This document shows positions 1,773 through 64,000 of a stretch of 64,000 bases of DNA, one piece after another. A model generated the notes under the pieces. The model did no database searches, was not told the DNA's origin, and worked only from the letters and a program-made list of their open reading frames with translations. The stretch lies in the sequence record KU686213.1; one strand, 5' to 3'. The position numbers were made by a program, and so were the translations under genes. How positions within the stretch are numbered: the first letter of the stretch is position 1; each line of letters begins with the position of its first letter.

Positions 1773-1773
1773 T

Positions 1774-2523: not shown

Positions 2524-2528
2524 GTATT

Positions 2529-3467
2529 ATGGCTAAATCATCCCCCAAACCAAGCTTACAATACCCCACCAATATTGCTAATGGCAATAATGACTACTTT
2601 CATTTGCAAATTTTTGAATATAAACCACTGGGTCTTGGTGGGGGTGGTGATAATATATTTGATGTTCCGTCAAGTCAAGCTCAAAGACCTAAAGTAGACA
2701 AAGAAACTAGTGGTGATAACCAGTCATACTTAGGTCAAATTATATTGCCTATGCCAGACAACATTGGTGATAATAACTCAGTTTCTTGGGACACTGATAC
2801 ATTAAACTCATTGACCATTGCCGGTGCAGGTACGCTCAGTGATGCTATATCAAAATTAAATTTGAATAATCCTGATCCAGGAGGGGCTTTAGATACAGTA
2901 AAAGATAGTGCATCCAAATTTTTAGATGCACTAAAAGATATTGACGTAAGAGGTAGTTTAAAAAATGCGTTAATAACTAGTGCCATAACTGGGGGAAATG
3001 TTGATCCAAACTCAATAATTAGTAGAACAACTGGACAAGTATTAAATCCAAACTTAGAGCTTCTATTTAAGGGAGTTATTTTGAGACAGTTTAACTATAG
3101 CTTTACACTAACACCAAGAACCAGTGAAGAGGGAACTCAGATTAAGGGTATCATAAATACTCTTAAGAAAAGAATGTCAGCAAAAAATACCACAGGTGCT
3201 GCTGCTGGTATATTCATTAAGGCACCTGATGTGTTCCAGCCAAGATTCATGCAAGGTCAAAAACCACATCCATTTTTATATAGTATAAGGCAGTGTGCTT
3301 TAGTGTCTATGAATGTTAATTATGATGGCGCAGGAATATATGCAACATATGGAGACGGCACACCAGTTAAAATGTCTTTACAGATGTCATTTAGAGAATT
3401 GAGTCCGTTATACTCTGAAGACTATAAAGATGGTTTACCCGGTCCAGATGAAGGAGTTGGATTCTAA
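2529..3467 (+). CDS. gp48: Baseplate tail-tube cap
   Basis: IILPMP, NPNLELLFKG..LRQFNYSF, DGTPV...SFREL motifs. Confidence 0.9.
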   Translation: MAKSSPKPSLQYPTNIANGNNDYFHLQIFEYKPLGLGGGGDNIFDVPSSQAQRPKVDKETSGDNQSYLGQIILPMPDNIGDNNSVSWDTDTLNSLTIAGAGTLSDAISKLNLNNPDPGGALDTVKDSASKFLDALKDIDVRGSLKNALITSAITGGNVDPNSIISRTTGQVLNPNLELLFKGVILRQFNYSFTLTPRTSEEGTQIKGIINTLKKRMSAKNTTGAAAGIFIKAPDVFQPRFMQGQKPHPFLYSIRQCALVSMNVNYDGAGIYATYGDGTPVKMSLQMSFRELSPLYSEDYKDGLPGPDEGVGF

Positions 3468-4117
3468 TGACTTATTTCAGACAGCTGCCGAATATTGAAT
3501 ATCAAAACTTCCTAAATGATCGCACAGGATCACAGGACTATATTTTGATGAAGAATATTTTCCTTAGGGGAAAATTGAGAGAAGACCTAGAAAGTAATTT
3601 TACAGTATTTCAGAAGTATAGTATCAAAGGTGATGAAAGACCTGATGAGATTGCTTATGATATATACGGATCATCTCAATATGACTGGGTTGTTCTAATT
3701 ACTGCTAGAATCATTACTTATCAAAATGACTACCCATTAACGAGTCAAGAACTCTATGATTATACCTTAAATAAGTATGGTGTTGAGGGTATGAATGCTA
3801 TCAATCACTATGAGAGTGTTGAGGTTAGAGATAGATTGGATAGGTTGGTATATCCAGCAGGTATCGTTGTAGCTAAAGATTTTACTATACCCAATCCAGA
3901 TACCCCAACATCATTTATCAGCCCTGTAGTTGGTGTTAGTAACTTTGAATATGAGACAAATAAGAATGATAGAAAGCGTAATATCACTATTCTAAGACCT
4001 CTATACTTAAATCAATTCTTGAATGATATGAGAGAAATCTCTAAGTATGGATTTAACTCAGAATATATTAATTCAACTACGATTAGAGCGGAGAATAGCA
4101 AGACTAAGAGCCCCTAA
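3467..4117 (+). CDS. gp53: Baseplate wedge subunit
   Basis: YFRQLP start, ERPDEIAYDIYG...DWVVL, NFEYE..KND.KRNI motifs. Confidence 0.92.
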   Translation: MTYFRQLPNIEYQNFLNDRTGSQDYILMKNIFLRGKLREDLESNFTVFQKYSIKGDERPDEIAYDIYGSSQYDWVVLITARIITYQNDYPLTSQELYDYTLNKYGVEGMNAINHYESVEVRDRLDRLVYPAGIVVAKDFTIPNPDTPTSFISPVVGVSNFEYETNKNDRKRNITILRPLYLNQFLNDMREISKYGFNSEYINSTTIRAENSKTKSP

Positions 4118-4125
4118 TTAGCCGT

Positions 4126-4132
4126 CTAAATA
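4126..4132 (+). promoter_or_regulatory. Late promoter
   Basis: CTAAATA upstream of gp26. Confidence 0.6.
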
Positions 4133-4159
4133 ACTATAGCATTCTACAAATTCTTTATT

Positions 4160-4870
4160 ATGGCGCTTCCTAAGATTGCCAAAGTGACTCACGAGACTAT
4201 TATTCCCTCAACTGGGAAGAAGATTAAGTTTCGTCCGTTTCTTGTGAAAGAGGAAAAGGTACTTATTTTAGCTCGCGAGTCTAACGACCAAAACGAGATG
4301 GTTAAGGGTATCATTGATGTAATCAATGCTTGCGTTATGACGAAAGGATTTTCTACTGAAAATCTATCCACTTTTGATATTGAATATATTTTCCTTAGTA
4401 TTAGGGGTAAGTCTATTGGGGAAGATGTTGAAGTTGTTGTTACTTGCCCTGATGATGGAGTGACTAGAGTCAATCATACTATTTTCTTGGATGAGGTAAA
4501 AGTCATCTTTGATGATGAACACTCAATGCAAGTTAAGATTGATGATACATATTCTGTTCTGATGAAGTATCCTAGTATTGAAGCTGTTATGGCTGCTGAT
4601 TCTGAGAATGTAAGTGTTACTGATAGTCTAGAACTTATTGCATCTTGCATAGATCAGATTTATTCTGAGGAGGACTCCTGGTCTTCTAGTGATAGTACTA
4701 CAGCAGAATTGGTCGAATGGGTTGAAGAACTTGAACCAAAGCAATTTGAGGGAATTGAGAAGTTCTTTACTACAATGCCTAAACTAAGTCATACCATTCA
4801 GGTTACTAACCCAGAAACTAAGGTGACTAGTGATGTTGTACTTGAGGGGCTAGGATCTTTTTTCGCGTAA
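4160..4870 (+). CDS. gp26: Baseplate hub assembly protein
   Basis: MALPKI, FRPFLVKEEKVL, FDIEYIFLxIRGKSIGE, FFTTMPKL motifs. Confidence 0.92.
   Translation: MALPKIAKVTHETIIPSTGKKIKFRPFLVKEEKVLILARESNDQNEMVKGIIDVINACVMTKGFSTENLSTFDIEYIFLSIRGKSIGEDVEVVVTCPDDGVTRVNHTIFLDEVKVIFDDEHSMQVKIDDTYSVLMKYPSIEAVMAADSENVSVTDSLELIASCIDQIYSEEDSWSSSDSTTAELVEWVEELEPKQFEGIEKFFTTMPKLSHTIQVTNPETKVTSDVVLEGLGSFFA
4858..4864 (+). other. Candidate -1 ribosomal frameshift site T TTT TTC
   Basis: X XXY YYZ heptamer phased to gp26 codons; the -1 frame is open into the gp51 ATG at 4873. Confidence 0.55.
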
Positions 4871-4872
4871 GT

Positions 4873-5052
4873 ATGGCTCACGAAGACCTTGAGTCATACT
4901 ATAAAACAAACTTTGCTCTAATACAACATCATAAATACAGTTTAAGTGATATTGAAAATCTTATCCCTTGGGAAAGAGATATATACATTACACTACTTAA
5001 AAACTGGATTGAAGAAGAAGAGCAACGCATAGCACAACAACAGCAGCGCTAA
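4873..5052 (+). CDS. gp51: Baseplate hub assembly catalyst (59 aa, absent from ORF track)
   Basis: Translates MAHEDLESYYKTNFALIQHHKYSLSDIENLIPWERDIYITLL..., typical of this family. Confidence 0.85.
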   Translation: MAHEDLESYYKTNFALIQHHKYSLSDIENLIPWERDIYITLLKNWIEEEEQRIAQQQQR

Positions 5053-6896
5053 TGAACTTATTTGGAGCCGCCACTACGGGAGTTGATCCACAAACTGGAA
5101 CATACCTCTCCAAAGAACAAAGAGTCGCAATGTTCCGCGCATCTAGGGGACAGGGTGGCGGAACAGCTGGTGGCGGAAACAATTCTGCTGGGTCTCAAGT
5201 AACTCCAAAGACTGCTATTGTTGTAGCTAATAAGTTTTCTGAAATTACACAGACACTTAGTAATAACTATCAGACTGCTAGTGCTGGTGTTGCAGAGCAG
5301 GTTGTCGAAAATAGGGCACGTATTGAAAATCTTTATCGTATTGTATATGATAGAAGAAAAGAAGATTTAAAAAGAGAGAAGCAAGAAACTAGAAATACTT
5401 TAATTGGAGCTGAGAGGAGTAAGAGGGGACTTAAGGAGGGATTTGTAGAAGGCATCTCTTCCGCAGCAGCTGCAGCAGTAGCACCATTACAGAAAGCAGC
5501 AGCGGCAGTACAGAAGCCCATTATGTCCCTATGGGATAAAATAAGGAATGCTCTACTGTTATTGACTGCAGCTTGGGTTATTGATAATCTACCTGCAATC
5601 CTGAAGAAGTTTGATGAATTTTTTGGTAGTATAAAGAGCTTAAAGGATACATTGACAAAAGCTCTGGTTAATATCAGAGGTGTATTTGGTATATTTGATG
5701 GTATTATTAGGGGTATAGTACGTACAATTGGCGCAGTAATTAAAACTGCTTATAGAGTTGGTAAGGCTATTTTTCAGTCAGCATTTCGTTTAGGTAGAGC
5801 AGTATTTAATGCTATTAAAAAGGTAGTTGAGACCGTAGTTAGGACTATTTTTAAGGGTATTCGTGCTTTAGTGGGTGGTATAGGTAATGCTTATCGTGCC
5901 GCTAGGGGATTATTACCAGGTGGAAATAAGCCAACAACCCCAAAACTACCAGATAAACAGCCTAAAAATGTCTTCCAAAGGTTGTGGGGTAAGGTTACTA
6001 AAGCTGCTACAGGACTAAAAGAATTTGCTGGAAATCAATACGGCAAACTGAAAGAGGGTGCTGATAAATTTATGACGGGATTTAGTAATCTACGCTCCAA
6101 GGCAATGGAGAAACTGAATCCTTTAAAATCATATGCTACAAAGGAAGGTATTAAAGAGGGTAATACTGCTAGTAGGACAAAGGGTATACAGGACCTGTTG
6201 GGGAAGGTATTCGAGAAAGCGGGTATTGCAGGTAAGGGTATACTGAAAAATGCAGGTAAGATTGCAAAGAACTTATTAAGATTACCTGGTATTGGTCTTG
6301 CTGTTGACGTAATGCTCAATAAAGCAGGTGGGCAAGGGATGGGTGAGTCACTTATTAGAGGCTTGGCTTCTAGTATTGCTGGGATGGTTGGTATGAAAGC
6401 CGGTGCTGCTGTTGGTGCTGGTCTTGGTACAGTAATTCTTCCTGGTATTGGTACTGCTGCTGGTGGTATTTTAGGAGGTATTATAGGATCTATTCTTGCT
6501 GGCTCTGGTGGTGATGCTCTCGCTAAAGCAGGTATGGAGAGTGTTGGGATGGAAACCACATCTGATGCCGAGATGGTGGAGAATTATAAGCCAGTTGTAG
6601 AGTCTGTAATTGGTAGTGATAAGTCCAGTACCGCAGGACAGCCTAGTCCTGCTGCAGCCATCACTCCAAGCACTCCAAGCACACCAGATGGTATGCAAGT
6701 TCCCGAAGGCTCTAATACTACAAATAATGTTACTGTTGAGCAAATGCCCCCTATTATGGAAAATATAGAGAGAGAAAAGAAGGAAGTTATACCTGAACAA
6801 CCAGTTCCTACAATCTCTACTAGAGACCCTCAGACAGATCTTTATAGAGCTATGGCTAGTAAGAGCTATCAGCTTAATTTGGCGGGTACATTCTAA
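5052..6896 (+). CDS. Tape-measure-like tail protein
   Basis: Helical Ala/Lys-rich, Gly-zipper GAAVGAGLG..GGILGGIIG; directly follows gp26/gp51. Confidence 0.55.
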   Translation: MNLFGAATTGVDPQTGTYLSKEQRVAMFRASRGQGGGTAGGGNNSAGSQVTPKTAIVVANKFSEITQTLSNNYQTASAGVAEQVVENRARIENLYRIVYDRRKEDLKREKQETRNTLIGAERSKRGLKEGFVEGISSAAAAAVAPLQKAAAAVQKPIMSLWDKIRNALLLLTAAWVIDNLPAILKKFDEFFGSIKSLKDTLTKALVNIRGVFGIFDGIIRGIVRTIGAVIKTAYRVGKAIFQSAFRLGRAVFNAIKKVVETVVRTIFKGIRALVGGIGNAYRAARGLLPGGNKPTTPKLPDKQPKNVFQRLWGKVTKAATGLKEFAGNQYGKLKEGADKFMTGFSNLRSKAMEKLNPLKSYATKEGIKEGNTASRTKGIQDLLGKVFEKAGIAGKGILKNAGKIAKNLLRLPGIGLAVDVMLNKAGGQGMGESLIRGLASSIAGMVGMKAGAAVGAGLGTVILPGIGTAAGGILGGIIGSILAGSGGDALAKAGMESVGMETTSDAEMVENYKPVVESVIGSDKSSTAGQPSPAAAITPSTPSTPDGMQVPEGSNTTNNVTVEQMPPIMENIEREKKEVIPEQPVPTISTRDPQTDLYRAMASKSYQLNLAGTF

Positions 6897-12910: not shown

Positions 12911-15871
12911 ATGTCTATTCAATTTCCAGCAAATCCAACAATTGGTCAAACATTTACAGATCCTGTAACTAATATCACTTACTATTGGAGTGGTAGTTAT
13001 TGGTCTGCTCAAGGTCCCGGAACGGGTATTGGAGCCACAGGCGCTTCAGGTTCCGCAGGGGCTACGGGCGCTGGTGCTACGGGTGCTTCGGGTATTCCTG
13101 GTCCTAGGGGAAAGACTGGATCAACAGGTCCTAAAGGAGATAAGGGAGATAGAGGTTTTATTGGATTGACTGGCGCAACTGGTCCCGATGGATCACCTGG
13201 TGGTGCTACTGGTCCTCAAGGTGAGTTGGGTTCTACTGGTGCTACTGGTACTGTTGGACCTCTAGGTTCTACTGGTGCTACTGGTATTAGGGGTCTTACA
13301 GGTGATCCAGGTGGTGCTACTGGTGCTACTGGTATTGCGGGTCTTACTGGAAATCAGGGTGCTACTGGTATTCAGGGTCCTATTGGTGATCCAGGTGGTG
13401 CTACTGGTGCTACTGGCGTTCAGGGACCACAGGGAGCAACTGGATCTGGTGCTACTGGTGTCCGAGGAGCAACTGGTGAGCAAGGACTAACTGGACCACA
13501 GGGTGATCCTGGTGGTGCTACTGGTGCTACAGGTCCTCAAGGTTTTATTGGCGCTACTGGTATTGGTGCTACTGGAGCCACTGGTATTCAGGGACCACAG
13601 GGAGCTACTGGTGTTCAGGGTCCACAGGGAGATAGTATTACTGGAGCAACTGGTCCTTTCGGTCCTGGCGGACTACCTGGAGCCACTGGATTAACTGGTC
13701 CCACTGGTCCACAGGGTGCTACTGGTGTTGGTGCTAGTGGTGCTACTGGTATTCAGGGTGATCCTGGTGGAGCCACTGGTGCTACTGGTGTTCTTGGTTC
13801 TACTGGAGCAACTGGAATCACTGGAGCTACGGGTGAGTTGGGTGCTACTGGACCACAAGGACAGCCGTCATTGGTTCCTGGACCTGATGGCTCTACGGGT
13901 TCTACTGGTCCTATTGGTCCTGTTGGTGCTACTGGTGTTGGTGCTACTGGTGCTACTGGTATTAATGGTCCTCCTGGTCCAAGAGGGCTTACTGGTCCTA
14001 CAGGTGCTACTGGGGTTGTTGGTCCTTCAGGTGGTATTACAGCTCAATGGGACGCTAATGTATCTGTTCTAAATGCTAACAACGCTGCCCTTATCGCAGA
14101 CTCCACAGGTTCTAATCTAAAAATATTTAAAGTATCAAAATTTGATCAAGGTTTTGGTGATCAAACAGCATTCTTAAGTGGATTGGTGCGGGGAAATACA
14201 ATCACACTAGCTTCTGGTACTGGATCTTATATCTTTGAGGTCAAGGCTAATAGTGGTCTAGTCAATTCTGCTGGCGTTGAATGCTTCACCATCTTGGTTG
14301 AATCAACAGGTGGTAGTGGAGTACTTGATGCAGGTGCAATCACACTAACCAAGACAGTAACCAGCGCAACCTTCGCATTCTCTACAGCATCAATTGCATA
14401 TCCTAGTGCTGATGGTGATTTAACAATTGACTATAACTTTGAGTTCAACGGATATCCAAAGTATGTCGCATTCTCCCCAACAGATGTTTTAGGTGAAGAT
14501 GTATCACAATTCTTCTTTGATCCTTTAGCCAATAGCCCAAACTTCACAGAGTTCTACTTCCAAGCACAAATCAGTGGTTCTATTAACGACTTCAGGTTTA
14601 ATGTGAGGGGTGGTAATTACTATGCAGATATTAACTCTTGGTTATATGTTGGTGAAGTAGAGACTTTATATGAAGTTCCTGTAGGTAGTGCTGATAATAT
14701 CTCTGCTATTTGGAATGTTCAGGTTGCTGCTGTAGCTACGGGTGCTACTGGTCTTCCTGGTAATCCAGGTGGAGCCACTGGTGCTACTGGCGCTCAAGGT
14801 GTTGCAGGTTCTCCTGGTGGAGCCACTGGTGCTACTGGTGTTCAAGGTATTGCTGGTTTAGATGGAGCAACAGGTCCACAAGGTGCTGCTGGTCTTCCTG
14901 GTATTCAAGGTGATCCAGGTGGTGCTACTGGTGCTACTGGATTTACTGGTGCTATTGGAGCTACTGGTATTGATGGGATAGTTGGAACAACTGGAGCCAC
15001 TGGTCCTCAAGGCGATCCTGGTGGTGCTACTGGTGCTACTGGTCTTCAAGGTTCAACTGGTTTAGGTGCTACTGGCGCTACAGGTCCTCAAGGTGATCCT
15101 GGTGGTGCTACTGGTCCTCAAGGTCTACAAGGAAATCCTGGTACAAATGGTATTCCTGGTGATCCTGGTACAAATGGATTGAACGGGTCTACAGGTGCTA
15201 CAGGTCCACAAGGTACATTTGGATTAACGGGTGCTACTGGATTAACTGGTCCCACGGGTCTTGGTGAGCTTGGTGGTACAGGTGCTACTGGTGCTACAGG
15301 TCTTCCTGGTGCTGGCGGTACTCCTGGTTCTGATGGTGAGATTGGAGCTACTGGTCTTCAAGGTACACAAGGTGTGGATGGTGTACAAGGTACTGAAGGA
15401 TTGGTTGGGGCTACTGGTCCTATTGGTCCACAAGGTCCAGCAAGTGGTGCTACAGGTGCTACTGGCTCTATTGGTCCACGGGGTTCTACGGGTGATCAAG
15501 GCGAGCCTGGTCCTCCTGGTCCTTTCGGTGGTCCTGCTGGTCCTCCTGGTCCTCCTGGTCCTGGTGGCGGTCCTACTGGTGCTGATGGCGCTACGGGTGC
15601 TACAGGCTTAACTGGTCCTTCAGGTGAGAAAGGAGATGCTGGTTCAATTGGTGCTCCTGGCTCTACTGGTGTTGAGGGACCCAAAGGTGATGGTGGAGCT
15701 ACTGGTCCACAAGGTATTCAAGGTATTCAGGGAAACAATGGTGGATTGGGAGCTACTGGTGCTACTGGACCCGATGTGAGGGCAGTTGGTATCAACGCAA
15801 TCTTTACTACCGCAGATGGAAAGACTATAACTGTTACTGATGGAATTATTACTAATGTAGTTGACGCCTAA
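12911..15871 (+). CDS. Collagen-like fibre protein 1
   Basis: Two long interrupted Gly-X-Y blocks ([12 protein letters not shown]) around a globular domain; N-terminal FPxNPxxGQ...W motif. Confidence 0.85.
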
Positions 15872-53606: not shown

Positions 53607-53691
53607 GAGCATACAGTGCCCACTCATAGACTATAATTACAGGAGTAGACACACCCCCACCTCAATCAAACAAACTACACACAAATAACAA

Positions 53692-53850
53692 ATGAAAACA
53701 TCACACACTGTATTAATTTCAGCTACAGCAGCATCTTCATTCGTCATTGGTAAGAACTATGCACCTCGAACAACTTGGGACATTTTTATTGTTTTGTTGC
53801 TAACTGCTATTATGAGTCTTATGATTCAATTTGTGAGGGAAAATAGTTGA
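53692..53850 (+). CDS. Two-TM microprotein paralogue A (52 aa)
   Basis: MKTSHTVLISATAASSFVIGKNYAPRTTWDIFIVLLLTAIMSLMIQFVRENS. Confidence 0.6.
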   Translation: MKTSHTVLISATAASSFVIGKNYAPRTTWDIFIVLLLTAIMSLMIQFVRENS

Positions 53851-53905
53851 GGTATATTCTAATTCCACCCCCACCTCAATCAAACAAACTACACACAAAT
53901 AACAA

Positions 53906-54064
53906 ATGAAAAACTTACACATTGCAGCAATTTCAGCGGTATTATCATTTACATTTATTATTGGATTAACATATGTACCTGAAACAACTGGTTATTTTAT
54001 TGCTGGTTCTGTATTAACTGCTGTTATTAGTCTTGTTATTGGTTCTATGAGGGAAAATAGTTGA
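53906..54064 (+). CDS. Two-TM microprotein paralogue B (52 aa)
   Basis: MKNLHIAAISAVLSFTFIIGLTYVPETTGYFIAGSVLTAVISLVIGSMRENS. Confidence 0.6.
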   Translation: MKNLHIAAISAVLSFTFIIGLTYVPETTGYFIAGSVLTAVISLVIGSMRENS

Positions 54065-54154
54065 GGTATATTCTAATTCCACCCATTGCAGCGCCTATTC
54101 ACCTGTCGCGCCACTAATTGTACTTGCAGTAATCTTTACTTTGGATAATAAACT

Positions 54155-54331
54155 ATGAAAACATCACATACTGTATTAATTTCAGCTACAGCAGCATCTT
54201 CATTCGTCATTGGTATGAACTACGCACCTATAATATCTTATAATATTTTTGCTGTTTTAGCACTAACTGCTGTATTTACTCTTATTGTTAAAGGAATCCA
54301 ATTCATTATTAAAAACCCAAATGAAATCTAA
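54155..54331 (+). CDS. Two-TM microprotein paralogue C (58 aa)
   Basis: MKTSHTVLISATAASSFVIGMNYAPIISYNIFAVLALTAVFTLIVKGIQFIIKNPNEI. Confidence 0.6.
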   Translation: MKTSHTVLISATAASSFVIGMNYAPIISYNIFAVLALTAVFTLIVKGIQFIIKNPNEI

Positions 54332-56039: not shown

Positions 56040-56244
56040 AATACTGCGCGGTAAATAACCTTCGCGTGTGGATATACTGCGATGCATATAACCTGTGTGC
56101 CTGCATACACTGCGCAGCATATAACATGCATTACGCAGCATATATCGCAGCATATATGCACACATTACGCAGTATATCTCGTACACGTACACGCAGTATA
56201 TAATAATATTGTTCACTGCGGGAGCTGTCACTCTCGCAGTATTT
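56040..56244. repeat. CGCAGYATAT direct/inverted repeat array (iteron-like)
   Basis: Direct copies at 56113, 56134, 56146, 56168, 56192 (near-match 56235); inverted at 56072 (near-match 56040). Confidence 0.85.
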
Positions 56245-56597: not shown

Positions 56598-56739
56598 TAT
56601 ACTTTGTAATTATACTTTGAGTTAATTGTTATTACTTAATGAGGCATTATGTGCCGATAGGTGAAGTGTCCACAAAACCGAATATTTACCCCAGGATGCC
56701 TTATAGTTGATTCATCAACACAAAGGGGCATCCTTTTTA

Positions 56740-57021
56740 ATGAATACCGAGTATCAACTGGCAGACACAATTACTGAAACTTTAACAACAATTTCATCTC
56801 GTTGTAGTCAGTTAATCAATGAAGATCGCTTAGAAGATGTTACATCAATGCTCAATGAGTGGACACTTAATGATGACACAGTAGTGCTGACTCACTTCCT
56901 CAATGAGACTACTGATAGTATTGAAGATCAGCTGATGTATGTTACTATGAGTGAAACTCACATCACAGAGGGATCATTCTGGTTTGATCCCGAGGTTGAA
57001 CTCCCCACCGACAACATTTAA
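56740..57021 (+). CDS. Hypothetical early protein
   Basis: Follows cassette at 56666. Confidence 0.6.
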   Translation: MNTEYQLADTITETLTTISSRCSQLINEDRLEDVTSMLNEWTLNDDTVVLTHFLNETTDSIEDQLMYVTMSETHITEGSFWFDPEVELPTDNI

Positions 57022-57034
57022 TTTTATTAAAAAA

Positions 57035-57238
57035 ATGAATCTTACAAACGACCAGCGCCTAGCTCTTGCTCAACGTATCACTGACGAGTTTAAATTGTTC
57101 GTTAAAGAAGAACTAGTATATCAAGTTGATGATATGAAAGATAACGACCAGCTGAATCACGATTACTATATTACATCTAGCGACCAAGAGGATATCACAA
57201 AACTGGTAATTGACCTCATTGCTGTGCCAGTTAGCTAA
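57035..57238 (+). CDS. Hypothetical early protein
   Basis: MNLTNDQRL... Confidence 0.6.
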   Translation: MNLTNDQRLALAQRITDEFKLFVKEELVYQVDDMKDNDQLNHDYYITSSDQEDITKLVIDLIAVPVS

Positions 57239-57304
57239 GTGTCCACTAAATCCCCCACTGGTTCGCTAGTGGGTTATATTACATACATCAACACAAGAAC
57301 CCCA

Positions 57305-57493
57305 ATGACCTCCGATCTCATCGAACTAATGGAAGCACAGGGATCCGATGGAATCCTAGAAATGATGGCTGATAGAGATGGTTCAGCTTTCTTGCTTGAT
57401 AGGCTCTTTGCTTCAATGGATGAGACGGAAGTTGCCGAGTGGACCACCTGGTTAAAGACCAGTTTGAAAACCTACACATCAAACCAACCATAG
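57305..57493 (+). CDS. Hypothetical early protein
   Basis: Follows cassette at 57239. Confidence 0.6.
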   Translation: MTSDLIELMEAQGSDGILEMMADRDGSAFLLDRLFASMDETEVAEWTTWLKTSLKTYTSNQP

Positions 57494-57536
57494 GGTCCTC
57501 AATGCCCTATACTAATCACATCAACACAGGACCCCA

Positions 57537-57734
57537 ATGGACATCAGAGTATACTGTACATCTGAGGAGAGTTTAAACCAAGCAGTGGAGCTTATCCAAA
57601 TGCTAGACGATAATGCTAGCATCTCCACGTGGGAGCCTGATGGGGACGATGGGACCTATGGGGCATTCGTTGATGGTATTGACGATCAACTAGCCACCAC
57701 CTTGGGACAGTTGTACGAAGTGTCCACTGACTGA
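57537..57734 (+). CDS. Hypothetical early protein
   Basis: Follows truncated cassette ending TATACT near 57510. Confidence 0.6.
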   Translation: MDIRVYCTSEESLNQAVELIQMLDDNASISTWEPDGDDGTYGAFVDGIDDQLATTLGQLYEVSTD

Positions 57735-57785
57735 CCCACTGGGTCCTCAATGCCCTATACTAATCACATCAACACAGGAACCCCA

Positions 57786-57941
57786 ATGAAAAAGTCATTC
57801 AAGGTTTGTCTCTCAAAGATGGATAATCCAAATTTCCTTAATTTTATTATTGTTGAGGATTGTGTTGATATGGATGAATGTGTTGAACATATTCACTCCA
57901 CCGAAAGAGGATGGGTGATTGATTCTATCAAGCAGCTTTGA
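57786..57941 (+). CDS. Hypothetical early protein
   Basis: Follows cassette at 57720. Confidence 0.55.
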   Translation: MKKSFKVCLSKMDNPNFLNFIIVEDCVDMDECVEHIHSTERGWVIDSIKQL

Positions 57942-58023
57942 TGGGACACTTAGCTAAGTGACCACTGAACCACCCATAGGGCACTCAATGCCCTATACTA
58001 ATCACATCAACACAAAACAACCA

Positions 58024-58344
58024 ATGACCACTGCCCCACATTTCGTTCGTTCTACAATGAGCCTCGGACCTACTGAGAGCATCTGCTTCAAAGTGAGCTG
58101 TGACGCAAAAGCACAATGGGAGAATGGAATCTTCCACAACTCACGATATGGAATCTTCTTTCTTTGTGAGGAGGGAGGGAAGCTGAAGCTTGAGCTCACA
58201 TCAAAGGGACTCGACACCATTAAGTTCCGTAAGTGTACAGTCAAGAGTGAAGCAGGGGCAGTGAACCGCATCCTAAAATGGATGGGTGATATTATGGGAG
58301 ACAGTATCTTCCTTCCTATGCCTGAGTTTGAGGAAGCAAACTAA
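58024..58344 (+). CDS. Hypothetical early protein
   Basis: Follows cassette at 57958. Confidence 0.65.
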   Translation: MTTAPHFVRSTMSLGPTESICFKVSCDAKAQWENGIFHNSRYGIFFLCEEGGKLKLELTSKGLDTIKFRKCTVKSEAGAVNRILKWMGDIMGDSIFLPMPEFEEAN

Positions 58345-58372
58345 CAGCGCTCTATTTAACCTTCGCATCATA

Positions 58373-58478
58373 ATATACTGCGCAGCATATAACATGCACG
58401 CAGTATATAATATACATCACACACATTACTAATGAACAACTACATCGACGACGCAGCACTCTATGAAGATATACTGCG
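58373..58478. repeat. Second CGCAGYATAT cluster
   Basis: Inverted at 58373 and 58469, direct at 58381 and 58399; shares ACTGCGCAGCATATAACATGCA with 56109. Confidence 0.8.
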
Positions 58479-58599
58479 CGAGGACGAAGTATATAATGGG
58501 CTACGCAGGCTTGAGCTGCCTGTAAGGGATGGACGCAGGCAACAGCGTAGACGCAGGGAGCGCCAGCGTCAAGCTTGTTACAATAAGTATCACAACTAG
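58432..58599 (+). CDS. Small Arg-rich protein (55 aa)
   Basis: MNNYIDDAALYED...RRQQRRRRERQRQ. Confidence 0.4.
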   Translation: MNNYIDDAALYEDILREDEVYNGLRRLELPVRDGRRQQRRRRERQRQACYNKYHN

Positions 58600-58678
58600 G
58601 ACAGTATACTAACTGTCCACCAAACCAACACAGCGCAGCCATCTGCGCTATATTATATACATCAACACAAGGAACCCA

Positions 58679-58846
58679 ATGAACACATTCACACCCAATC
58701 CTATGCTTGAGATGTTAATGAGTCGTGAACAGTTAATGGAAGATATTGATGCGATTGTTGATAGTTTTGACCGTGATTCAGAAAGTAATGATGATTTAGT
58801 TTCTAGGCTATGTGATGCTGTATGTGCTAATTTCCCCGTTAAGTAA
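58679..58846 (+). CDS. Small early protein (55 aa)
   Basis: Follows cassette at 58613; REQLMEDID...LCDAVC.NFP. Confidence 0.6.
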   Translation: MNTFTPNPMLEMLMSREQLMEDIDAIVDSFDRDSESNDDLVSRLCDAVCANFPVK

Positions 58847-58873
58847 CACCAACTCAATTCACACTATCTAACA

Positions 58874-59101
58874 ATGAACCTCGGTCATCTTCAAACAAAA
58901 ATGTTGACGTTCGTCAATGAGCGTCCTGGTTTTCATCACATAAGAAAAGACAGAGATACACTTAGAGTGGCTAATTCACTCGCAAAGCGTAACTTAATAA
59001 TACTTGAAGAATATCTTGGAGACTATACTATTCGGGCTATTGATAGCGAACGTGTTGATGTAAATGATTATAACTACGCAGGGAGTAGGCATCACTATTG
59101 A
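58874..59101 (+). CDS. Hypothetical protein, winged-helix-like
   Basis: RVANSLAKRNLI segment. Confidence 0.5.
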   Translation: MNLGHLQTKMLTFVNERPGFHHIRKDRDTLRVANSLAKRNLIILEEYLGDYTIRAIDSERVDVNDYNYAGSRHHY

Positions 59102-59183
59102 GTGTGCCAGTTGCGCTAGTGTCCACTAAATCACCCACTGGGCTCCTGGTGGGTTATATTAATCACATCAACACAAAACCTCA

Positions 59184-59426
59184 ATGAACACCCTCAAAGA
59201 TCTCCAAGCTAGAGTTGCCGCACTAATTGAACAGCAAGGCGAAGATTCTGTATGTGCTGCGTGGATTTACACTGGCGAAGATGTTATTAGATATGACGAA
59301 AATTGTGATGCAATACGTCAGCCCAAAGAATTGAGTGATAAAGTAATAAATGGTTTAGATGCCTATGATTACATTTATCAAGTTATTGATGAGGCTATTA
59401 CTCAAGAAATGGATGAGTGCGTGTGA
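59184..59426 (+). CDS. Hypothetical early protein
   Basis: Follows cassette at 59119. Confidence 0.65.
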   Translation: MNTLKDLQARVAALIEQQGEDSVCAAWIYTGEDVIRYDENCDAIRQPKELSDKVINGLDAYDYIYQVIDEAITQEMDECV

Positions 59427-59506
59427 CGGTTGGGCTAGTGTCCACTAGGGCTAGCAGCTCCCCTCCTAGCTGCTACAATTGATTCATACCAAACAAGGGA
59501 ACTCAA

Positions 59507-59707
59507 ATGAGCACCGTTGAAATCAACTACGAAATCGCCAAGCTTCGTGAAGAGCGTCAGCAGCTGCTGAACCGTGCGAACGTAATCGGTGATTGTATCC
59601 AAGAGCTTGCGCAGCTGCGCACCAAACAGCAGCTTGCCTCAAAGCGTGAGCACGATGAGCGCTTCGAGTCCAGTGAGGATCTGTTCGCTGAGATGTTTGG
59701 CGGTTGA
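59507..59707 (+). CDS. Hypothetical early coiled-coil protein
   Basis: Single-gene cassette. Confidence 0.65.
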   Translation: MSTVEINYEIAKLREERQQLLNRANVIGDCIQELAQLRTKQQLASKREHDERFESSEDLFAEMFGG

Positions 59708-59781
59708 TTAAGTGGCACAAGGGGGCTAGGCAAGCCCCCACCACCTGCTACAATTGATTCATACCAAACAAAGGAACCCCA

Positions 59782-60048
59782 ATGACTTCAGTTTTTCTAG
59801 TATTTCATGTTGAGTATCCTTTCAACGAAGGCTGTGATAATGTTATTGGTGATGAATTCTCTAAAGTATTTCATACCAAAGAAGATGCTGAAGAGTATAT
59901 CAAGAAGACTGATGTTTCAGAGTCAGTTCGAGTTGCTAAGTGGGCAAAAGAAAAGTGTGATAGGTTGGGTTGGGGTGAGGACATGCTTAAGCGCCTGATT
60001 AAATCAAATGTCAAAGAATGGGAGATTAAAGAGATTCCATTCGGCTGA
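59782..60048 (+). CDS. Hypothetical early protein
   Basis: Single-gene cassette. Confidence 0.65.
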   Translation: MTSVFLVFHVEYPFNEGCDNVIGDEFSKVFHTKEDAEEYIKKTDVSESVRVAKWAKEKCDRLGWGEDMLKRLIKSNVKEWEIKEIPFG

Positions 60049-60088
60049 TGCCCTCTCGCTACAAATAAAAACCACTAAAAAACACAAA

Positions 60089-60355
60089 ATGATCTCAACT
60101 CAAATCACTATTACAATCAAACGTAGCGAGTGGGAATGTTACATCGACACCCCAGATTCAGTCATCGAAACTATTAACAACTACTTTGCCTTTGTATTAC
60201 AATCACGTGATACGGCATTAGAAGCACAAGCTGAAATCTTTAAGTTTATGTGCATGTTTAGTGAGTTTGGTTTCTATGATAGTGAGCCTAGGCAATGTGC
60301 AACAGATACTATTAACGATTTCTTCGGGACAAGCTTGAGCAGGTGGGACAGTTGA
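60089..60355 (+). CDS. Hypothetical early protein
   Basis: MISTQITI...; FGFYDSEPR motif. Confidence 0.6.
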   Translation: MISTQITITIKRSEWECYIDTPDSVIETINNYFAFVLQSRDTALEAQAEIFKFMCMFSEFGFYDSEPRQCATDTINDFFGTSLSRWDS

Positions 60356-60429
60356 GCTAGTGGCACAAGGGAGCCGCCACTGGCTCCCACAGCTGCTATG
60401 ATTACAAAGTAATCGAGGGAGACACCCCA

Positions 60430-60621
60430 ATGAACATTCAAGTCAACGGCTACGCAATCGACACCCTTAAGCAAGCGCTTCAAGAGTCTTCGATGCTATG
60501 GCAAGAGCGTATCGACCAAGCCGAGCGTGGCGAACGTCAGAACCTCAGCATCGAGGGAGCTCGTGCGATGCAAGATGACTTGAGGGACATCCTAGAGCAG
60601 ATCAGGTTGCAAGACGCCTGA
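60430..60621 (+). CDS. Hypothetical early protein
   Basis: Single-gene cassette. Confidence 0.65.
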   Translation: MNIQVNGYAIDTLKQALQESSMLWQERIDQAERGERQNLSIEGARAMQDDLRDILEQIRLQDA

Positions 60622-60694
60622 TCAACTGGCACACGGGAGCCACACAGGCTCCCACCACCTGCTACAATTGATTCATACCAAACAAAGGAACCCA

Positions 60695-60952
60695 ATGAAC
60701 GGCTGGACTAACTACGAAACCTGGAACGCATCACTTTGGATCAGCAACGAGGAGTTCCTCTACAACACCGCTCGCGCTTGCGTGACCTATTGTGACCCCA
60801 GCGAGCAGCCTTGGACCAAGTTCGTCCGTTGTATGACCGAGGGACAGATCGGCAGCTTCCTTGGTGAGACTGGCGATGGCGTCCGCTGGGATGATACCAG
60901 CATCAACGCCGATGAGATGAACGAGATGATGCTAGAGTTAGTCGCCGACTGA
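60695..60952 (+). CDS. Early phage protein
   Basis: MNGWTNYETWNASLWI motif, ...TGDGVRW. Confidence 0.75.
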   Translation: MNGWTNYETWNASLWISNEEFLYNTARACVTYCDPSEQPWTKFVRCMTEGQIGSFLGETGDGVRWDDTSINADEMNEMMLELVAD

Positions 60953-61023
60953 ACTGGCACAAGGGGGCTCGCAGCCCCCTCCCACAGCTGCTACAATTAC
61001 AGAGTAATCAAAACACAGCACCA

Positions 61024-61194
61024 ATGACCGAAATGACTTTCTACGTGATGTTCAGCTCCGAGGAGCTTACAGAGCCAGACTACATTGGTCCTTTCTACAA
61101 GCTAGAAGACGCCGAAGATTACGCAGATCACCAGAACCAAGGGCTTGCGAATAACGGCATCCCTGGCTGGGTTGCTTCTTACGGTGTCGTCTGA
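61024..61194 (+). CDS. Small early protein (56 aa)
   Basis: IGPFYKLEDAEDYA motif; single-gene cassette. Confidence 0.6.
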   Translation: MTEMTFYVMFSSEELTEPDYIGPFYKLEDAEDYADHQNQGLANNGIPGWVASYGVV

Positions 61195-61221
61195 ACCAAT
61201 CTCCAAACTGTCCCAATGGGG

Positions 61222-61250
61222 TTGACGGTTCCCCTCAAAACCGTTATATT
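61222..61250 (+). promoter_or_regulatory. Sigma70-type promoter
   Basis: TTGACG-17 bp-TATATT. Confidence 0.65.
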
Positions 61251-61312
61251 AGATTCATCGGTTGAGCCACACTCTACAGGCTCCCGATTATTCACCTCAT
61301 TTCTCTACAACA

Positions 61313-61615
61313 ATGAAAACCACACTTTCCACCATCTTCAGCCGCAATAACGTGATGAATGCCCTCCTGGCTCTCTGCACTGCTATCGAGTTCTGCTACG
61401 ATATGGGCGCACGCTTCGGTACCTGGTATCGCAACGGCGGCAACGCACAGATCCGCAATGCCTTTGTAATGACGGTAGCAGCTCTCCTATGGCTCGGTGA
61501 GACCGCTAGGCTAGGTTATGCCGTGGTTCGCCGTGATGGTCCCCAATGGCTCGCACAGGCTAACGCAACACGCCATCGTATCAGCCGCGCATTCAGCTAC
61601 GAGTATGCCGCCTGA
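61313..61615 (+). CDS. Hypothetical early membrane-associated protein
   Basis: Hydrophobic helices. Confidence 0.6.
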   Translation: MKTTLSTIFSRNNVMNALLALCTAIEFCYDMGARFGTWYRNGGNAQIRNAFVMTVAALLWLGETARLGYAVVRRDGPQWLAQANATRHRISRAFSYEYAA

Positions 61616-61692
61616 GGCACTGTCACAAGGAGGCTAGCAGCTCCCCCCCTAGCTGCTACAATTGATTCATACCAAACAAAGGGAGCCACCCA

Positions 61693-61923
61693 ATGTCCAG
61701 CACCACTTACACCCAGGCAGCTTACGCCGAAGCAATCCGCCGCCTCTCGGCTGGCTACGTTTCAGAGTTTGCTGAGTTTGCTGCAGGTGATGAGAGGATG
61801 CATGAGCTGATGATGGAACTTGCTTCTGAGTTCGTTGATGCCAATCTACCCATCGTCAGGGAGGAGGACGCAATCGACGTAGCTGCTGAGCTCCACTTGG
61901 GCATCACAATCCGTGCCGTGTGA
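61693..61923 (+). CDS. Hypothetical early protein
   Basis: Single-gene cassette. Confidence 0.65.
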   Translation: MSSTTYTQAAYAEAIRRLSAGYVSEFAEFAAGDERMHELMMELASEFVDANLPIVREEDAIDVAAELHLGITIRAV

Positions 61924-62005
61924 CGGCTGACCAACTATCACAAGGGGGCTTGCCTAGCCCCCACCACCTGCTACAATTGATTCATACCAAACAAAGGAAC
62001 CTCAA

Positions 62006-62320
62006 ATGCGCAAGATTGAAATCCAAATGAACCGCGCTGTTCAGTCTGGCACCAATTTCAGCCAAGCTAACACCTCAGTTCATCATCACGAGGGCGTAGC
62101 AATTGTCCGCCTACACGGTAGCAAGATCGCTGAGGTAGGCGACGATTTCATCACTCTCTTCGATGGTGGCTTCCAATCCAATACTACCAAGAGCCGCCTC
62201 AATGCCTTGATGGCTGAGTTCTGCTCACCCGGTGAGAACGTATTCCAGAAAGCTTACCAGTGGTTCATTCGCGCTAACGGCGTCACCATCCCATTTGAGT
62301 CAGGTGTGACACTCCGCTAA
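62006..62320 (+). CDS. Early phage protein
   Basis: LHGSKIA...DGGFQSNTTKSRLNAL motif. Confidence 0.75.
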   Translation: MRKIEIQMNRAVQSGTNFSQANTSVHHHEGVAIVRLHGSKIAEVGDDFITLFDGGFQSNTTKSRLNALMAEFCSPGENVFQKAYQWFIRANGVTIPFESGVTLR

Positions 62321-62387
62321 ACTGGCACACGCTCCCTAGCGGGAGCTCCCCCAGCTGCTACAATTGATTCATACCAAAGGAACCACA

Positions 62388-62957
62388 ATGAACACCTTTC
62401 TGACCTCCTCATTCCAAAACGTTCGCTCTTCAAAGCGTACTGACGAACTCCACACCGTCTTGCTAGCTGAGGTACTGGAAGCTAACCCCCAGTGGGCAGG
62501 CTACGACTGGCAGTTCGAATACCGCCTTCCCGTTGACGGCTTCGGTGGAACCTTTGATATTGATATCGCCGGTTTCGTCAACGGTGAGCTGAAGGTGGCT
62601 GTCCTGGCTAAGGCAATGAACTCAAACGTCAATAAGAATATCAAAAACTACGCTAACACCACCATTGGCGAAGCTGCCCGTCTGACCTATGCCCCTGGCT
62701 TAGACCTCGAGGCTGTGCTCTTCGTTTCAGTCCTTCCCCGCACTGCCCCCCGCTTCAATAAGGCAGGCGAGGTTGTGGGACTTGACAACGTGCTAAGCGC
62801 TAAGGCTCGCACCAACATCGGCAATATCATCGAAGCTCAGTACGGTGGGCTGGTTCAGGTCATCGACCTATTCTTCGATATCGACAATATCTCAGAGATG
62901 CTGACCTCTGCCGACTTTCAAACTATCACCGTATCGAACGTCGATAAGGTGAGCTAA
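62388..62957 (+). CDS. Putative PD-(D/E)xK restriction-endonuclease-like protein
   Basis: FEYRL...FDIDIAG...VAVLAK..NSNVNKNIKNY..TTIGE pattern. Confidence 0.45.
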   Translation: MNTFLTSSFQNVRSSKRTDELHTVLLAEVLEANPQWAGYDWQFEYRLPVDGFGGTFDIDIAGFVNGELKVAVLAKAMNSNVNKNIKNYANTTIGEAARLTYAPGLDLEAVLFVSVLPRTAPRFNKAGEVVGLDNVLSAKARTNIGNIIEAQYGGLVQVIDLFFDIDNISEMLTSADFQTITVSNVDKVS

Positions 62958-63039
62958 GCCAATTGAGCCACTGGCACAAGGGAGCGGCACAGCTCCCCCC
63001 AGCTGCTACAATTGATTCATACCAAACAAAGGAACTCAA

Positions 63040-63318
63040 ATGAAAATCTCACTCGATCAGCAAGTCGCTCAACTCGCAGCCGAAGGTCATCAAGAGATTG
63101 CAGTCATCAAACTCCCTAGTCAGGCAACCCGCAAGCGTCGCAAGCCTAGCAAGCGTCGCACTACCTCTACGAATGCGGTCAGCCAAACTGCCTACACTCA
63201 AACCGAGAGCCGCAACCTAGGCAAGATCAATTCAGCCTATGCGCGTCAGCATAGTGCCGATAGGAGGGCAGCAGCTCAACAGCGAGCAGCCGAGCTTAAA
63301 GGTCAGCCAATCTTCTAA
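63040..63318 (+). CDS. Basic early protein
   Basis: IKLPSQATRKRRKPSKRR; single-gene cassette. Confidence 0.6.
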   Translation: MKISLDQQVAQLAAEGHQEIAVIKLPSQATRKRRKPSKRRTTSTNAVSQTAYTQTESRNLGKINSAYARQHSADRRAAAQQRAAELKGQPIF

Positions 63319-63388
63319 GAGGCACAAGGGGGCTAGGCAAGCCCCCACCAGCTGCTACAATTGATTCATACCAAACAAGGAACCCACA

Positions 63389-63835
63389 ATGGCTACTCTC
63401 AACTATTCACCCGCTCAGCAGACTCAACTCATTGAGTTCTATCAGCAATGGCTGCCTAGAGTCAATGCCTTCGGATACGACAATCTCCCCGACGGTTATC
63501 ACACATACTACCGCCACGGCAAGAAGCTGGCTAAGGCAGCAGCAGCCGCTAAGATAGTCGAAGCTAAAGCAGCGCGTCGTCGTGGCAATCCATACCTCCG
63601 TCCCGAAGTTGAATTTATTGTGCATAGCTACGTTCGGACCGATAGTCCTTCTATCGTTGCCGACGAATTTAAGGCAGCTTTTATCGACTCTCCCCATAGT
63701 CGCGAGAGCGTCCGCTCTTGTGCTGGGCAGCTTCGCTCATTAGACAACCTCTGCCCCGACGATACGGGCTGGACTGTAAAAAGCCTAGTCGCAGAAGTAG
63801 CTAGCGAATTATACCCCGAGCGCTTCGCCGCATGA
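63389..63835 (+). CDS. Hypothetical early protein
   Basis: Single-gene cassette. Confidence 0.65.
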   Translation: MATLNYSPAQQTQLIEFYQQWLPRVNAFGYDNLPDGYHTYYRHGKKLAKAAAAAKIVEAKAARRRGNPYLRPEVEFIVHSYVRTDSPSIVADEFKAAFIDSPHSRESVRSCAGQLRSLDNLCPDDTGWTVKSLVAEVASELYPERFAA

Positions 63836-63906
63836 TTCTATCAAGGGGCTAGCCACCTAGCCCCGATCTATGGTACAATTCATTCATACCAAACCAGGAA
63901 CCGACA

Positions 63907-64000
63907 ATGCCTTTCTCACCTGCCTGCCGCCTTTCAGACCAGACCCGTGTATGGGTTGAGCGCTCAATCTATGAAGGGTGCGATTGGCAAATCGAAAAGC
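63907..64000 (+). CDS. Early protein, truncated by window edge
   Basis: ATG after cassette; open to the window end. Confidence 0.45.
   Translation, partial: MPFSPACRLSDQTRVWVERSIYEGCDWQIEK

Follow-up and report, generated by a model that had tools for sequence, protein, structure and literature searches.

A gene array with repeated intergenic units

The window analysed, a stretch of 64,000 nucleotides, is 100% identical to bases 1–64000 of Synechococcus phage S-CAM7 (KU686213), a T4-like cyanomyovirus of the Kyanoviridae with a 214-kb genome. An array of small genes occupies 55–65 kb, in a variable region that precedes the baseplate genes gp25/gp6, and runs on past the end of the window to about 64.7 kb. 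From 59427 to 64665 there are 16 intergenic gaps, and around 14 of these are repeated units of 67–82 nt, in agreement with a sequence-only reading of this DNA in which such units bracket nearly every gene. Each unit runs from a stop codon through a core (type ACTGGCACA), a GC hairpin with a stem sequence that varies among units, TGn-TACAAT, a leader and AAGGAAC to an ATG.

The 24-mer CTGCTACAATTGATTCATACCAAA is present in the window in eight exact copies (at 59470, 59745, 60659, 61653, 61968, 62355, 63003 and 63352), the number given by that reading, and in one further copy with three mismatches at 63870; chance predicts none, and none was seen in 100 shuffled sequences. Across the 214-kb genome there are 11 related copies of the motif, all on the + strand and confined to 59.4–64.7 kb, and the family-B motif was not found elsewhere in the genome. 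A strict palindrome (TGTGCCAGT, gap, ACTGGCACA) had no match within the window, and its left arm TGTGCCAGT is present only at 57223 and 59103. The units and the cassettes that they separate are as follows.

56630–59183, + strand: family-A block, units starting at about 56665, 57238, 57719, 58612 and 59118, built of core AGTGTCCACT, a hairpin abutting TATAyT and leader CATCAACACAA
59427–59506, + strand: hybrid unit with family-A core AGTGTCCACT, imperfect hairpin, family-B tail (24-mer at 59470) and AGGGAAC; ATG at 59507
59507–59707, + strand: 66-aa cassette, phrog_3146, unassigned in function
59708–59781, + strand: family-B unit; core 59711–59720; hairpin 59721–59739 (GGGGGCT/AGCCCCC, loop AGGCA); -35-like TAGGCA 59727–59732; TGn and TACAAT 59746–59754; leader; AAGGAAC; predicted transcript start near 59761
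59782–60048 and 60089–60355, + strand: two low-GC genes that share one upstream unit, with no unit separating them
60356–60429, + strand: family-B unit with variant tail TGCTATGATTACAAAG; hairpin GGGAGCC/GGCTCCC
60430–60621, + strand: 63-aa cassette, phrog_35291, no function from the family
60622–60694, + strand: family-B unit with the exact 24-mer; hairpin GGGAGCC-ACACA-GGCTCCC, with compensatory changes relative to the hairpin at 59721
60695–60952, + strand: 85-aa cassette, DUF7249, with other neighbours in other cyanomyoviruses
60953–61023, + strand: family-B unit with variant tail TGCTACAATTACAGAG; hairpin GGGGGCT-CGC-AGCCCCC
61024–61194, + strand: 56-aa cassette, no functional match
61195–61312, + strand: A-like unit; core ACTGTCCCA; G4/C4 hairpin with TTGACG in the loop; 17-nt spacer; TATATT; longer leader
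61313–61615, + strand: 100-aa cassette, no functional match; internal tract 61433–61546 strongly divergent in MT586120
61616–61692, + strand: family-B unit; hairpin unlike that of the orthologous unit of two sister isolates; converted tract at about 61631–61652
61693–61923, + strand: 76-aa cassette, no functional match; two other cassettes at its place in the metagenomic relative L010
61924–62005, + strand: family-B unit; 19-nt hairpin that is the exact reverse complement of the hairpins at 59708 and 63319, loop flipped
62006–62320, + strand: 104-aa cassette, Kyano_Gp96, conserved across Kyanoviridae
62321–62387, + strand: family-B unit; hairpin GCTCCC/GGGAGC, of opposite polarity; left boundary of the cassette replaced in MT586120
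62388–62957, + strand: 189-aa cassette, PD-(D/E)XK nuclease-like fold; unrelated gene at its place in MT586120 and L010
62958–63039, + strand: family-B unit; right boundary of the cassette replaced in MT586120; hairpin differs in sister isolates
63040–63318, + strand: 92-aa cassette, no functional match; 89% identity in MT586120
63319–63388, + strand: family-B unit; hairpin replaced in MT586120 together with the downstream gene
63389–63835, + strand: 148-aa cassette; 31%-identical homologue in MT586120, chimera in KU686212, gene absent from L010
63836–63906, + strand: family-B unit with three-mismatch tail TGGTACAATTCATTCATACCAAA; hairpin GGGGCTAG/CTAGCCCC
63907–64000, + strand: start of a 72-aa cassette, the gene ending at 64125 in the record

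Pfam and PHROGs provided a function for none of the cassettes, matching only PHROGs and DUFs without assigned function. PDB sequences searched with a profile of the 189-aa family gave nothing useful, and no Rfam family matched between 50 and 64 kb. The hybrid unit at the head of family B is the A-to-B transition that had been placed near 59438.

A phased core of a probable promoter

The core lies 37–39 nt upstream of a -10 hexamer, in S-CAM7 as in 80 loci of other cyanomyoviruses. In the window, a -10-like hexamer follows at this distance for 27 of 31 cores on the + strand and for 2 of 10 on the − strand, and in the 80 loci, which were taken from IMG/VR, phased cores account for 113 of 214 on the gene strand and 5 of 111 on the opposite strand. 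The element also occurs in Syn9 and ACG-2014a, giving three named genera in addition to the metagenomic loci, and in distant cyanomyoviruses the core, its spacing and the -10 recur along with parts of the leader. The -10 is TACAAT preceded by TG (TGn-TACAAT). This fixed phase relative to the -10 fits a promoter element, suggesting that the core is one, in an outer position at −49 to −40. The hairpin overlies the -35 position, and the loops of some units contain -35-like hexamers (4 of 6 matches) 16–18 nt upstream of the -10. Judged by the extended -10 and the phased upstream core, the units look like the strong, uniform promoters that had been proposed.

A sigma-54 reading of TGGCAC was dropped in view of the fixed spacing to a sigma-70-type -10; sigma-54 is not known from cyanobacteria. 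In 2016 Doron et al. reportedly described an element upstream of early genes in T4-like cyanophages, said to differ from a plain sigma-70 promoter and to be abundant and conserved among these phages. The phased core here fits that element as described; the repeat array, the hairpin and the cassette exchange are observations of the present analysis.

Small mobile promoter elements of a MITE-like kind, inserting between genes on their own, would account for the many near-identical copies and for a partial additional copy of the 5' half of a unit at record position 64126. We consider this origin very improbable. The units have neither terminal inverted repeats nor target duplications, all copies share a single orientation, each takes up the entire interval between stop codon and ATG, at a fixed distance, and the motif is absent from the remaining genome.

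Hairpins of variable sequence

When units were folded individually, 16 of 19 distinct units folded better than shuffles (mean z −3.0), and the hairpins use at least eight different stem sequences. Per-unit folding was used in place of a fixed-frame covariation count on a MAFFT alignment, in which the signal was weak (75% paired versus 70.5% in shuffles) and stems fall in a different register from one unit to the next. T-runs are absent from the family-B hairpins, and a terminator scan of them was negative. Three sibling units of S-CAM7 (36011, 39898 and 41715) have a GC hairpin with T5-7 in the same spacer, as do units of another phage between core and -10, and by this likeness the hairpin resembles a terminator. 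In other cyanomyoviruses a hairpin is present in only about one-fifth of such units.

Similarity among units

The sequence-only reading held that neighbouring units are the most alike, a pattern that does not hold inside family B. Unit similarity did not follow distance there (Mantel test, p = 0.2 with whole units, 0.1 with core and hairpin), an adjacent unit was the best match for only 1–2 of 12 units, and the closest pairs are far apart (59708 and 63319 at 94%, 59427 and 61616 at 86%). Position affects similarity only in that the A block differs from the B block.

Comparison with relatives shows that units are homogenised within the genome. At all four comparable positions, the whole of this test, the unit resembles a paralogue elsewhere in the array more closely than its orthologue at the matching position. 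Hairpins differ between orthologous units of isolates that are 98–99% identical, yet match those of other units, showing that hairpins have been copied between units and swapped between orthologous units of sister isolates. The concerted evolution that had been proposed is supported as homogenisation. The similarities among the units speak for gene conversion over long distances or for ectopic exchange, not for the neighbour-only gradient that unequal crossing-over would leave. Promoter and leader are conserved across genera, so selection, and not conversion, may account for some of the sequence that units have in common.

Replacement of single genes at units

Gene order is identical for 18 of about 20 cassettes in three isolates, and sister isolates and metagenomic relatives differ by replacements, losses or additions of single genes with breakpoints in or adjoining units. 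In MT586120 a 196-aa gene of no relation to it stands in place of the 189-aa cassette (62388–62957): the alignment is lost at 62394, identity ends 3–4 nt before the ATG, and homology returns at the stop codon, at 62957. The cassette at 63389–63835 has given way there to its 31%-identical homologue, and is chimeric in KU686212. L010 keeps the order of the backbone, with two cassettes replaced and one absent, and in an ENA cyanomyovirus contig the DUF7249 gene adjoins a homologue of the 189-aa gene, within a similar array of 72–81-nt units. Replacements bounded by units number two among the three isolates, with further cases in L010 and the ENA contig, and gene content between units varies across relatives. 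Metagenome contigs also join unit to unit (60655 to 60985, 59408 to 59709 and 62325 to 63323), but these joints carry moderate weight only, because short contigs may be placed on the wrong repeat copy.

These differences bear on whether the units have any special role. They could be standard cyanomyovirus promoter and terminator signals kept alike by selection, the gene differences arising by general or illegitimate recombination. The signals shared with distant cyanomyoviruses (core, spacing and -10, with some of the leader) speak for this, as does the mostly conserved gene order, and the divergent tracts inside genes (61433–61546) indicate that ordinary recombination also acts away from units. 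We nevertheless think it unlikely, since both non-homologous replacements begin and finish in units, units are nearer to paralogues than to orthologues, and hairpin sequences, which selection leaves free to vary, have moved between units in near-identical isolates.

An enzyme of phage or host that recognises core and folded hairpin in the way that attC is recognised by an integrase, and cuts and joins the cassettes, would explain why hairpin structure is kept and sequence is not, and why a conserved core adjoins every hairpin; the exact flipped copy of one hairpin by another would suit a hairpin in DNA. The tyrosine integrase family PF00589 has no match in the 214-kb genome, although all 14 of 14 control genomes match, and breakpoints fall at varied places (ahead of the ATG, inside the hairpin loop, at the stop codon, in the last codons). 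The fixed core-to-(-10) phase fits a promoter element, and the scarcity of hairpins in such units of other cyanomyoviruses likewise argues against a recombination site, leaving recognition of this kind very improbable. The S-CAM7 genome does encode a RecA/UvsX recombinase.

Relation to PeSL cassettes and integrons

Promoter-early stem-loop (PeSL) cassettes are known from the T4-like phages RB49/phi1, T4/PST and KVP40/nt-1 (Arbiol 2010, PMC2839356; Comeau 2014, PMC4122927). The S-CAM7 array has several features in common with them: stem-loop, host-type promoter, ribosome site and ATG recur together between genes as one composite; small genes of unassigned function stand singly or a few at a time between copies, in a hyperplastic region; close relatives show insertions, deletions and replacements at the elements; and there is no site-specific recombinase. 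The G-run/C-run stems are like those of RB49/phi1.

The two also differ. In PeSLs the stem-loop lies upstream of a complete -35/N17/-10 promoter, an arrangement that the S-CAM7 units do not have; here the hairpin is inside the promoter, between the core and the -10 and over the -35. The -10 is of the extended TGn type, the family-B hairpins are without a T-run, and the host phage is a cyanophage. Published PeSL sets themselves vary in promoter type, with PmSL variants (PMC4122927), and we treat the hairpin placement as a difference of layout. Mini-circles formed by recombination between flanking elements, in infected cells and virions, are a PeSL feature (PMC2839356, PMC4122927); the S-CAM7 array is known here from sequence and assembled metagenome contigs. 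Dense PeSLs were sought in cyanophage S-PM2 and none was found (Puxty 2015, PMC4503421), and apart from that negative result our literature search found no description of PeSL-type arrays in cyanophages. What is found here thus matches cassettes already known in T4-like coliphages, the cyanophage setting and the hairpin-inside-promoter layout being the differences.

The likeness to integrons that had been suggested holds as an analogy only. One gene per repeat, a hairpin conserved in structure and variable in sequence, and variable gene content are common to both. Unlike an integron, S-CAM7 has no IntI or attC, each cassette has its own -10 and leader in place of one common Pc, and breakpoints are not at one fixed site, and exchange looks homology-driven.

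A model for the array

We favour, with a probability of about 0.75, a reading in which the array consists of PeSL-type regulatory cassettes, the units serving as cyanomyovirus promoters and exchange proceeding by the phage's homologous recombination. Each unit would be a compact promoter of a class common to cyanomyoviruses: positions of about −49 to −40 are taken by a core A[CG]TG[GT]C[C]AC, and a 27–29-nt spacer, which here holds a GC hairpin over the -35 position, separates it from an extended -10 (TGn-TACAAT); a leader of some 20 nt and a weak ribosome site, AGGA, come last. Each unit would presumably give rise to a short transcript made by host RNA polymerase, so that every small gene would be expressed on its own, probably early in infection. 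In read-through RNA the hairpin would probably act as a leaky terminator or protect 3' ends. Units share 24–33 identical bases, all in the same orientation, so the UvsX system could pair non-corresponding units, or units of different genomes that infect the same cell. Such pairing would homogenise units by gene conversion, and would allow a single gene between two units to be deleted, inserted or replaced with its expression signals intact.

A more speculative proposal, to which we give little credence, is that core, hairpin and -10 form a cyanomyovirus-wide promoter class without a -35 box in which the hairpin stimulates exchange as DNA; that it forms in DNA is suggested by the exact flipped copy. 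If this were true, ocean cyanophages would carry a general, integrase-free form of cassette shuffling with its recombination signal within an early promoter.

Implications

T4-like cyanophages are among the most abundant marine viruses, and for the majority of their variable genes no function is known. In S-CAM7 and its relatives, a dense PeSL-type array would offer a route to try, swap and discard small, presumably early genes while expression is kept, and would extend to marine cyanophages, where the one published search (S-PM2) was negative, a mechanism known from their coliphage relatives. The units give precise sites at which to look for deletions and gene swaps in laboratory-evolved S-CAM7 lines; a preprint on such lines reports many deletions in variable regions, without coordinates in its text. 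The phased core, as a marker of a promoter class, could be used to find presumed early genes of uncultured cyanophages.

An array of promoter–hairpin units ahead of the baseplate genes

The window is 100% identical to bases 1–64000 of Synechococcus phage S-CAM7 isolate 0910SB42 (KU686213.1), a 214-kb T4-like cyanomyovirus (Kyanoviridae, genus Mazuvirus). The array lies in a series of small plus-strand genes of unknown function that ends about 4 kb ahead of the gp25/gp6 baseplate genes, the type of site termed a hyperplastic region in T4-like phages. The sequence-only reading had described a 24-mer array here, and this observation was largely correct: the window holds eight exact copies and one with three mismatches, and shuffled sequence holds none. 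A looser pattern has 11 copies genome-wide, all on the plus strand at 59.4–64.7 kb, and the array extends about 700 nt beyond the window end. The sister isolates are MT586120 and KU686212; one of the two genomes carries 11 such copies and the other 12.

When all intergenic gaps are listed, those of 67–82 nt prove to be wholly occupied by a repeat unit, and we refer to the gene between two units as a cassette. The unit runs from the stop codon through a core (ACTGGCACA, AGTGGCACA or ACTGTCACA), a GC hairpin, 5–9 nt, TGn-TACAAT, TGATTCATACCAAAC, AAGGAAC and 3–6 nt to the ATG. This build is present in about 14 of the 16 gaps between 59427 and 64665; the gap at 60049–60088 has no unit. Units with the 24-mer tail form family B, and those of the block at 56630–59183 form family A. 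At 59427, a core of family A (AGTGTCCACT) is followed by a tail of family B, bearing out the earlier description of this unit as a hybrid.

Units of the same build (core, 27–29-nt spacer, −10) are also dispersed on the plus strand over window positions 30214–59183, with others at record positions 117739, 159485, 161790, 185396 and 214131; in several dispersed units the spacer contains a complete terminator, with both hairpin and T-run. The 5′ half of the unit (CCAGCCAAGGGGGTTG) has a second copy about 200 nt upstream of a full unit (14127–14141 and 14330–14391 of our S-CAM7 locus L001; record 64126–64390). The half-unit copy and the full unit flank a doubtful TTG-start ORF, and KU686212 diverges within this stretch. 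Several deposited gene starts (GenBank CDS 60008–60355, 60626–60952 and 61262–61615) fall inside or upstream of units; starting at the ATG after the AGGA site (60089, 60695 and 61313) gives shorter genes that match the repeated layout. ACTGCGCAGCATATA-like repeats form short arrays at 56040–56180 and 58344–58400 (repeat families D8 and D11).

The core is phased with the −10 hexamer

In the window, 27 of 31 plus-strand cores lie 37–39 nt upstream of a −10-like hexamer, compared with 2 of 10 minus-strand cores. The same spacing is found for 113 of 214 gene-strand cores and 5 of 111 opposite-strand cores in 80 cyanomyovirus loci, which were retrieved with the conserved Kyano_Gp96 protein as query. 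The core also occurs in Syn9 and ACG-2014a, members of other genera. This fixed spacing, together with the presence in other genera, argues that the core is a phased upstream promoter element, predicted to lie at about −49 to −40. The alternative that the core is a leftover of duplication was rejected on the phased spacing in the window and in the 80 loci. Doron et al. (2016, ISME J) reportedly described a novel early-gene regulatory element conserved among T4-like cyanophages, which may be the same element as the core.

The spacer covering the −35 position is taken up by the hairpin. Several units have a TTGACA-like hexamer (four of six positions) in the loop, 16–18 nt ahead of the −10. At the equivalent place ACG-2014a has true −35 boxes (TTGCAA and TTGAAA) and no hairpin.

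A hairpin within the predicted promoter

We compared the predicted folding of 34 nt from each of 19 distinct units, drawn from the window, the sister isolates and one metagenomic relative, with that of 1,000 shuffles. Sixteen of the 19 fold better (mean z −3.0), and pairing is kept across at least eight different stem sequences. A count of pairs at fixed alignment columns is only weakly positive, since the register of the stems varies between the aligned units. A significant hairpin is present in about 85% of the S-CAM7 family-B array units and in about one-fifth of 88 distinct units of metagenomic loci.

No family-B hairpin passes a terminator scan, because no T-run follows it, and the two family-A hairpins that do pass owe this to the T-rich −10 directly after. 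A GC hairpin followed by T5–7, which has the form expected of a textbook intrinsic terminator, occupies the same spacer in S-CAM7 units 36011, 39898 and 41715 and in units of a cyanomyovirus contig from ENA. The simplest reading is thus that the hairpin descends from, or functions as, a terminator, which for family B we infer.

The 19-nt hairpin of unit 61924 (61944–61962) is the exact reverse complement of those of units 59708 (59721–59739) and 63319 (63328–63346), with the loop TGCCT in place of AGGCA. This flipped copy points to hairpin formation at the DNA level, in the course of replication or repair.

Probable homogenisation of units within the array

Between isolates that are 98–99% identical, a stretch of about 20 nt in the hairpin of unit 61616 is different. 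Both sister isolates have at this unit the same hairpin as units 59708 and 63319, and the version in the window is nearly that found at the 63319 position in MT586120. At all four positions that can be compared, the S-CAM7 unit is nearer to another S-CAM7 unit (0.79–0.89) than to the unit at the matching position of the metagenomic relative (0.58–0.81). The hairpin matches and the closeness of paralogous units support concerted evolution of the units, and the homogenisation proposed from sequence alone was right in spirit. The accompanying claim that neighbouring units are most alike fails inside family B, where similarity does not drop with distance (Mantel p 0.1–0.2) and the most similar pairs are separated by 3.6 and 2.2 kb.

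Adjoining the array, a 214-nt repeat containing a small ORF is present in three tandem copies (53652–54328). Exactly one of these copies is missing from KU686212, where the alignment offset shifts by 214 nt at 53866–53870, and this loss reads as a clear unequal crossing-over.

Genes are exchanged at the units

The three S-CAM7 isolates are collinear across most of the array, with 18 of about 20 cassettes in common. The cassettes that vary between isolates or in a metagenomic relative (IMGVR_UViG_3300017744_000049) are:

61693–61923, plus strand: replaced by two other cassettes in the metagenomic relative.
62388–62957, plus strand: 189-aa gene; its place is taken in MT586120 by a 196-aa gene, the two showing no detectable similarity, and in the metagenomic relative by another gene.
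63389–63835, plus strand: 148-aa gene; a 31%-identical homologue in MT586120, a chimera with only the first 64 residues in common in KU686212, and missing from the metagenomic relative.

At the 189-aa gene the MT586120 alignment ends at 62394, just after the ATG, and restarts at 62957, at the stop codon. At the 148-aa gene the hairpin of the preceding unit is also replaced in MT586120. The metagenomic relative keeps the backbone order and shares cassettes at 76–89% amino-acid identity (49% for c64391). On the ENA contig (137 kb, from a more distant phage), a DUF7249 gene directly adjoins a homologue of the 189-aa gene; the two are five cassettes apart in S-CAM7. This pair lies within a similar array of 72–81-nt units ahead of gp25, and one of these units holds 24 nt of the S-CAM7 tail unaltered (TGCTACAATTGATTCATACCAAAC).

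Unit-to-unit joints are also present in metagenome contigs from four studies; examples link 60655 with 60985 (64 anchoring bases), 59408 with 59709 and, in two runs, 62325 with 63323. We give these joints moderate weight because the contigs are short and repeats may map to the wrong copy. Breakpoints fall at several positions within units, and one strongly divergent tract (61433–61546) is inside a gene, a pattern that resembles homologous recombination in which the units serve as portable homology, and does not resemble cutting at a fixed site. The S-CAM7 genome contains no tyrosine integrase and has a gene of the RecA family (UvsX).

PeSLs of T4-like phages are the nearest known counterpart

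Promoter-early stem-loops (PeSLs) are repeated elements that combine a stem-loop with an early promoter in hyperplastic regions of T4-like phages; they border small genes of unknown function, are located at indels between sister phages, and give rise to mini-circles by recombination (PMC2839356, PMC4122927). They are the closest known system to the S-CAM7 array, which, compared at the sequence level, shares the defining features tested except hairpin placement: the hairpin inside the promoter is a feature of S-CAM7. In the only cyanophage PeSL search that we found, PeSLs were judged sparse in S-PM2 (PMC4503421). The mechanism put forward in the sequence-only reading holds in spirit for uniform promoters, integrase-free exchange and homogenisation, but its integron analogy describes the array less well than the published PeSL model. 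The phased upstream core and the promoter-internal hairpin are the most interesting features remaining.

Cassette genes

All cassettes fall in phage families of unknown function, and the DUF7249 and Kyano_Gp96 cassettes represent two widespread cyanomyovirus families. The 189-aa protein is a widespread marine phage protein with more than 445 relatives at 65–77% identity. Its model has a high-confidence fold (pLDDT 89.7), and its structural matches, although weak (TM 0.3–0.4), are nearly all PD-(D/E)XK nucleases. A conserved pattern in the family (D57, D59 ... E67-x-K69) fits these matches.

Genes behind family-B units have a GC content of 0.50–0.56 and a GC3 of 0.51–0.73 (window 59507–64000, and L001 to record position 65270; also 35–5576 of locus L091), compared with a GC3 of 0.28–0.38 in flanking genes and in two low-GC genes within the array (59782–60355). 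The rise may point to a separate origin, or to tuning of presumed early genes to the codon usage of the GC-rich host at a stage when phage tRNAs are not yet present. The same local rise surrounds Kyano_Gp96 in other cyanomyovirus contigs and is seen in the ENA array.
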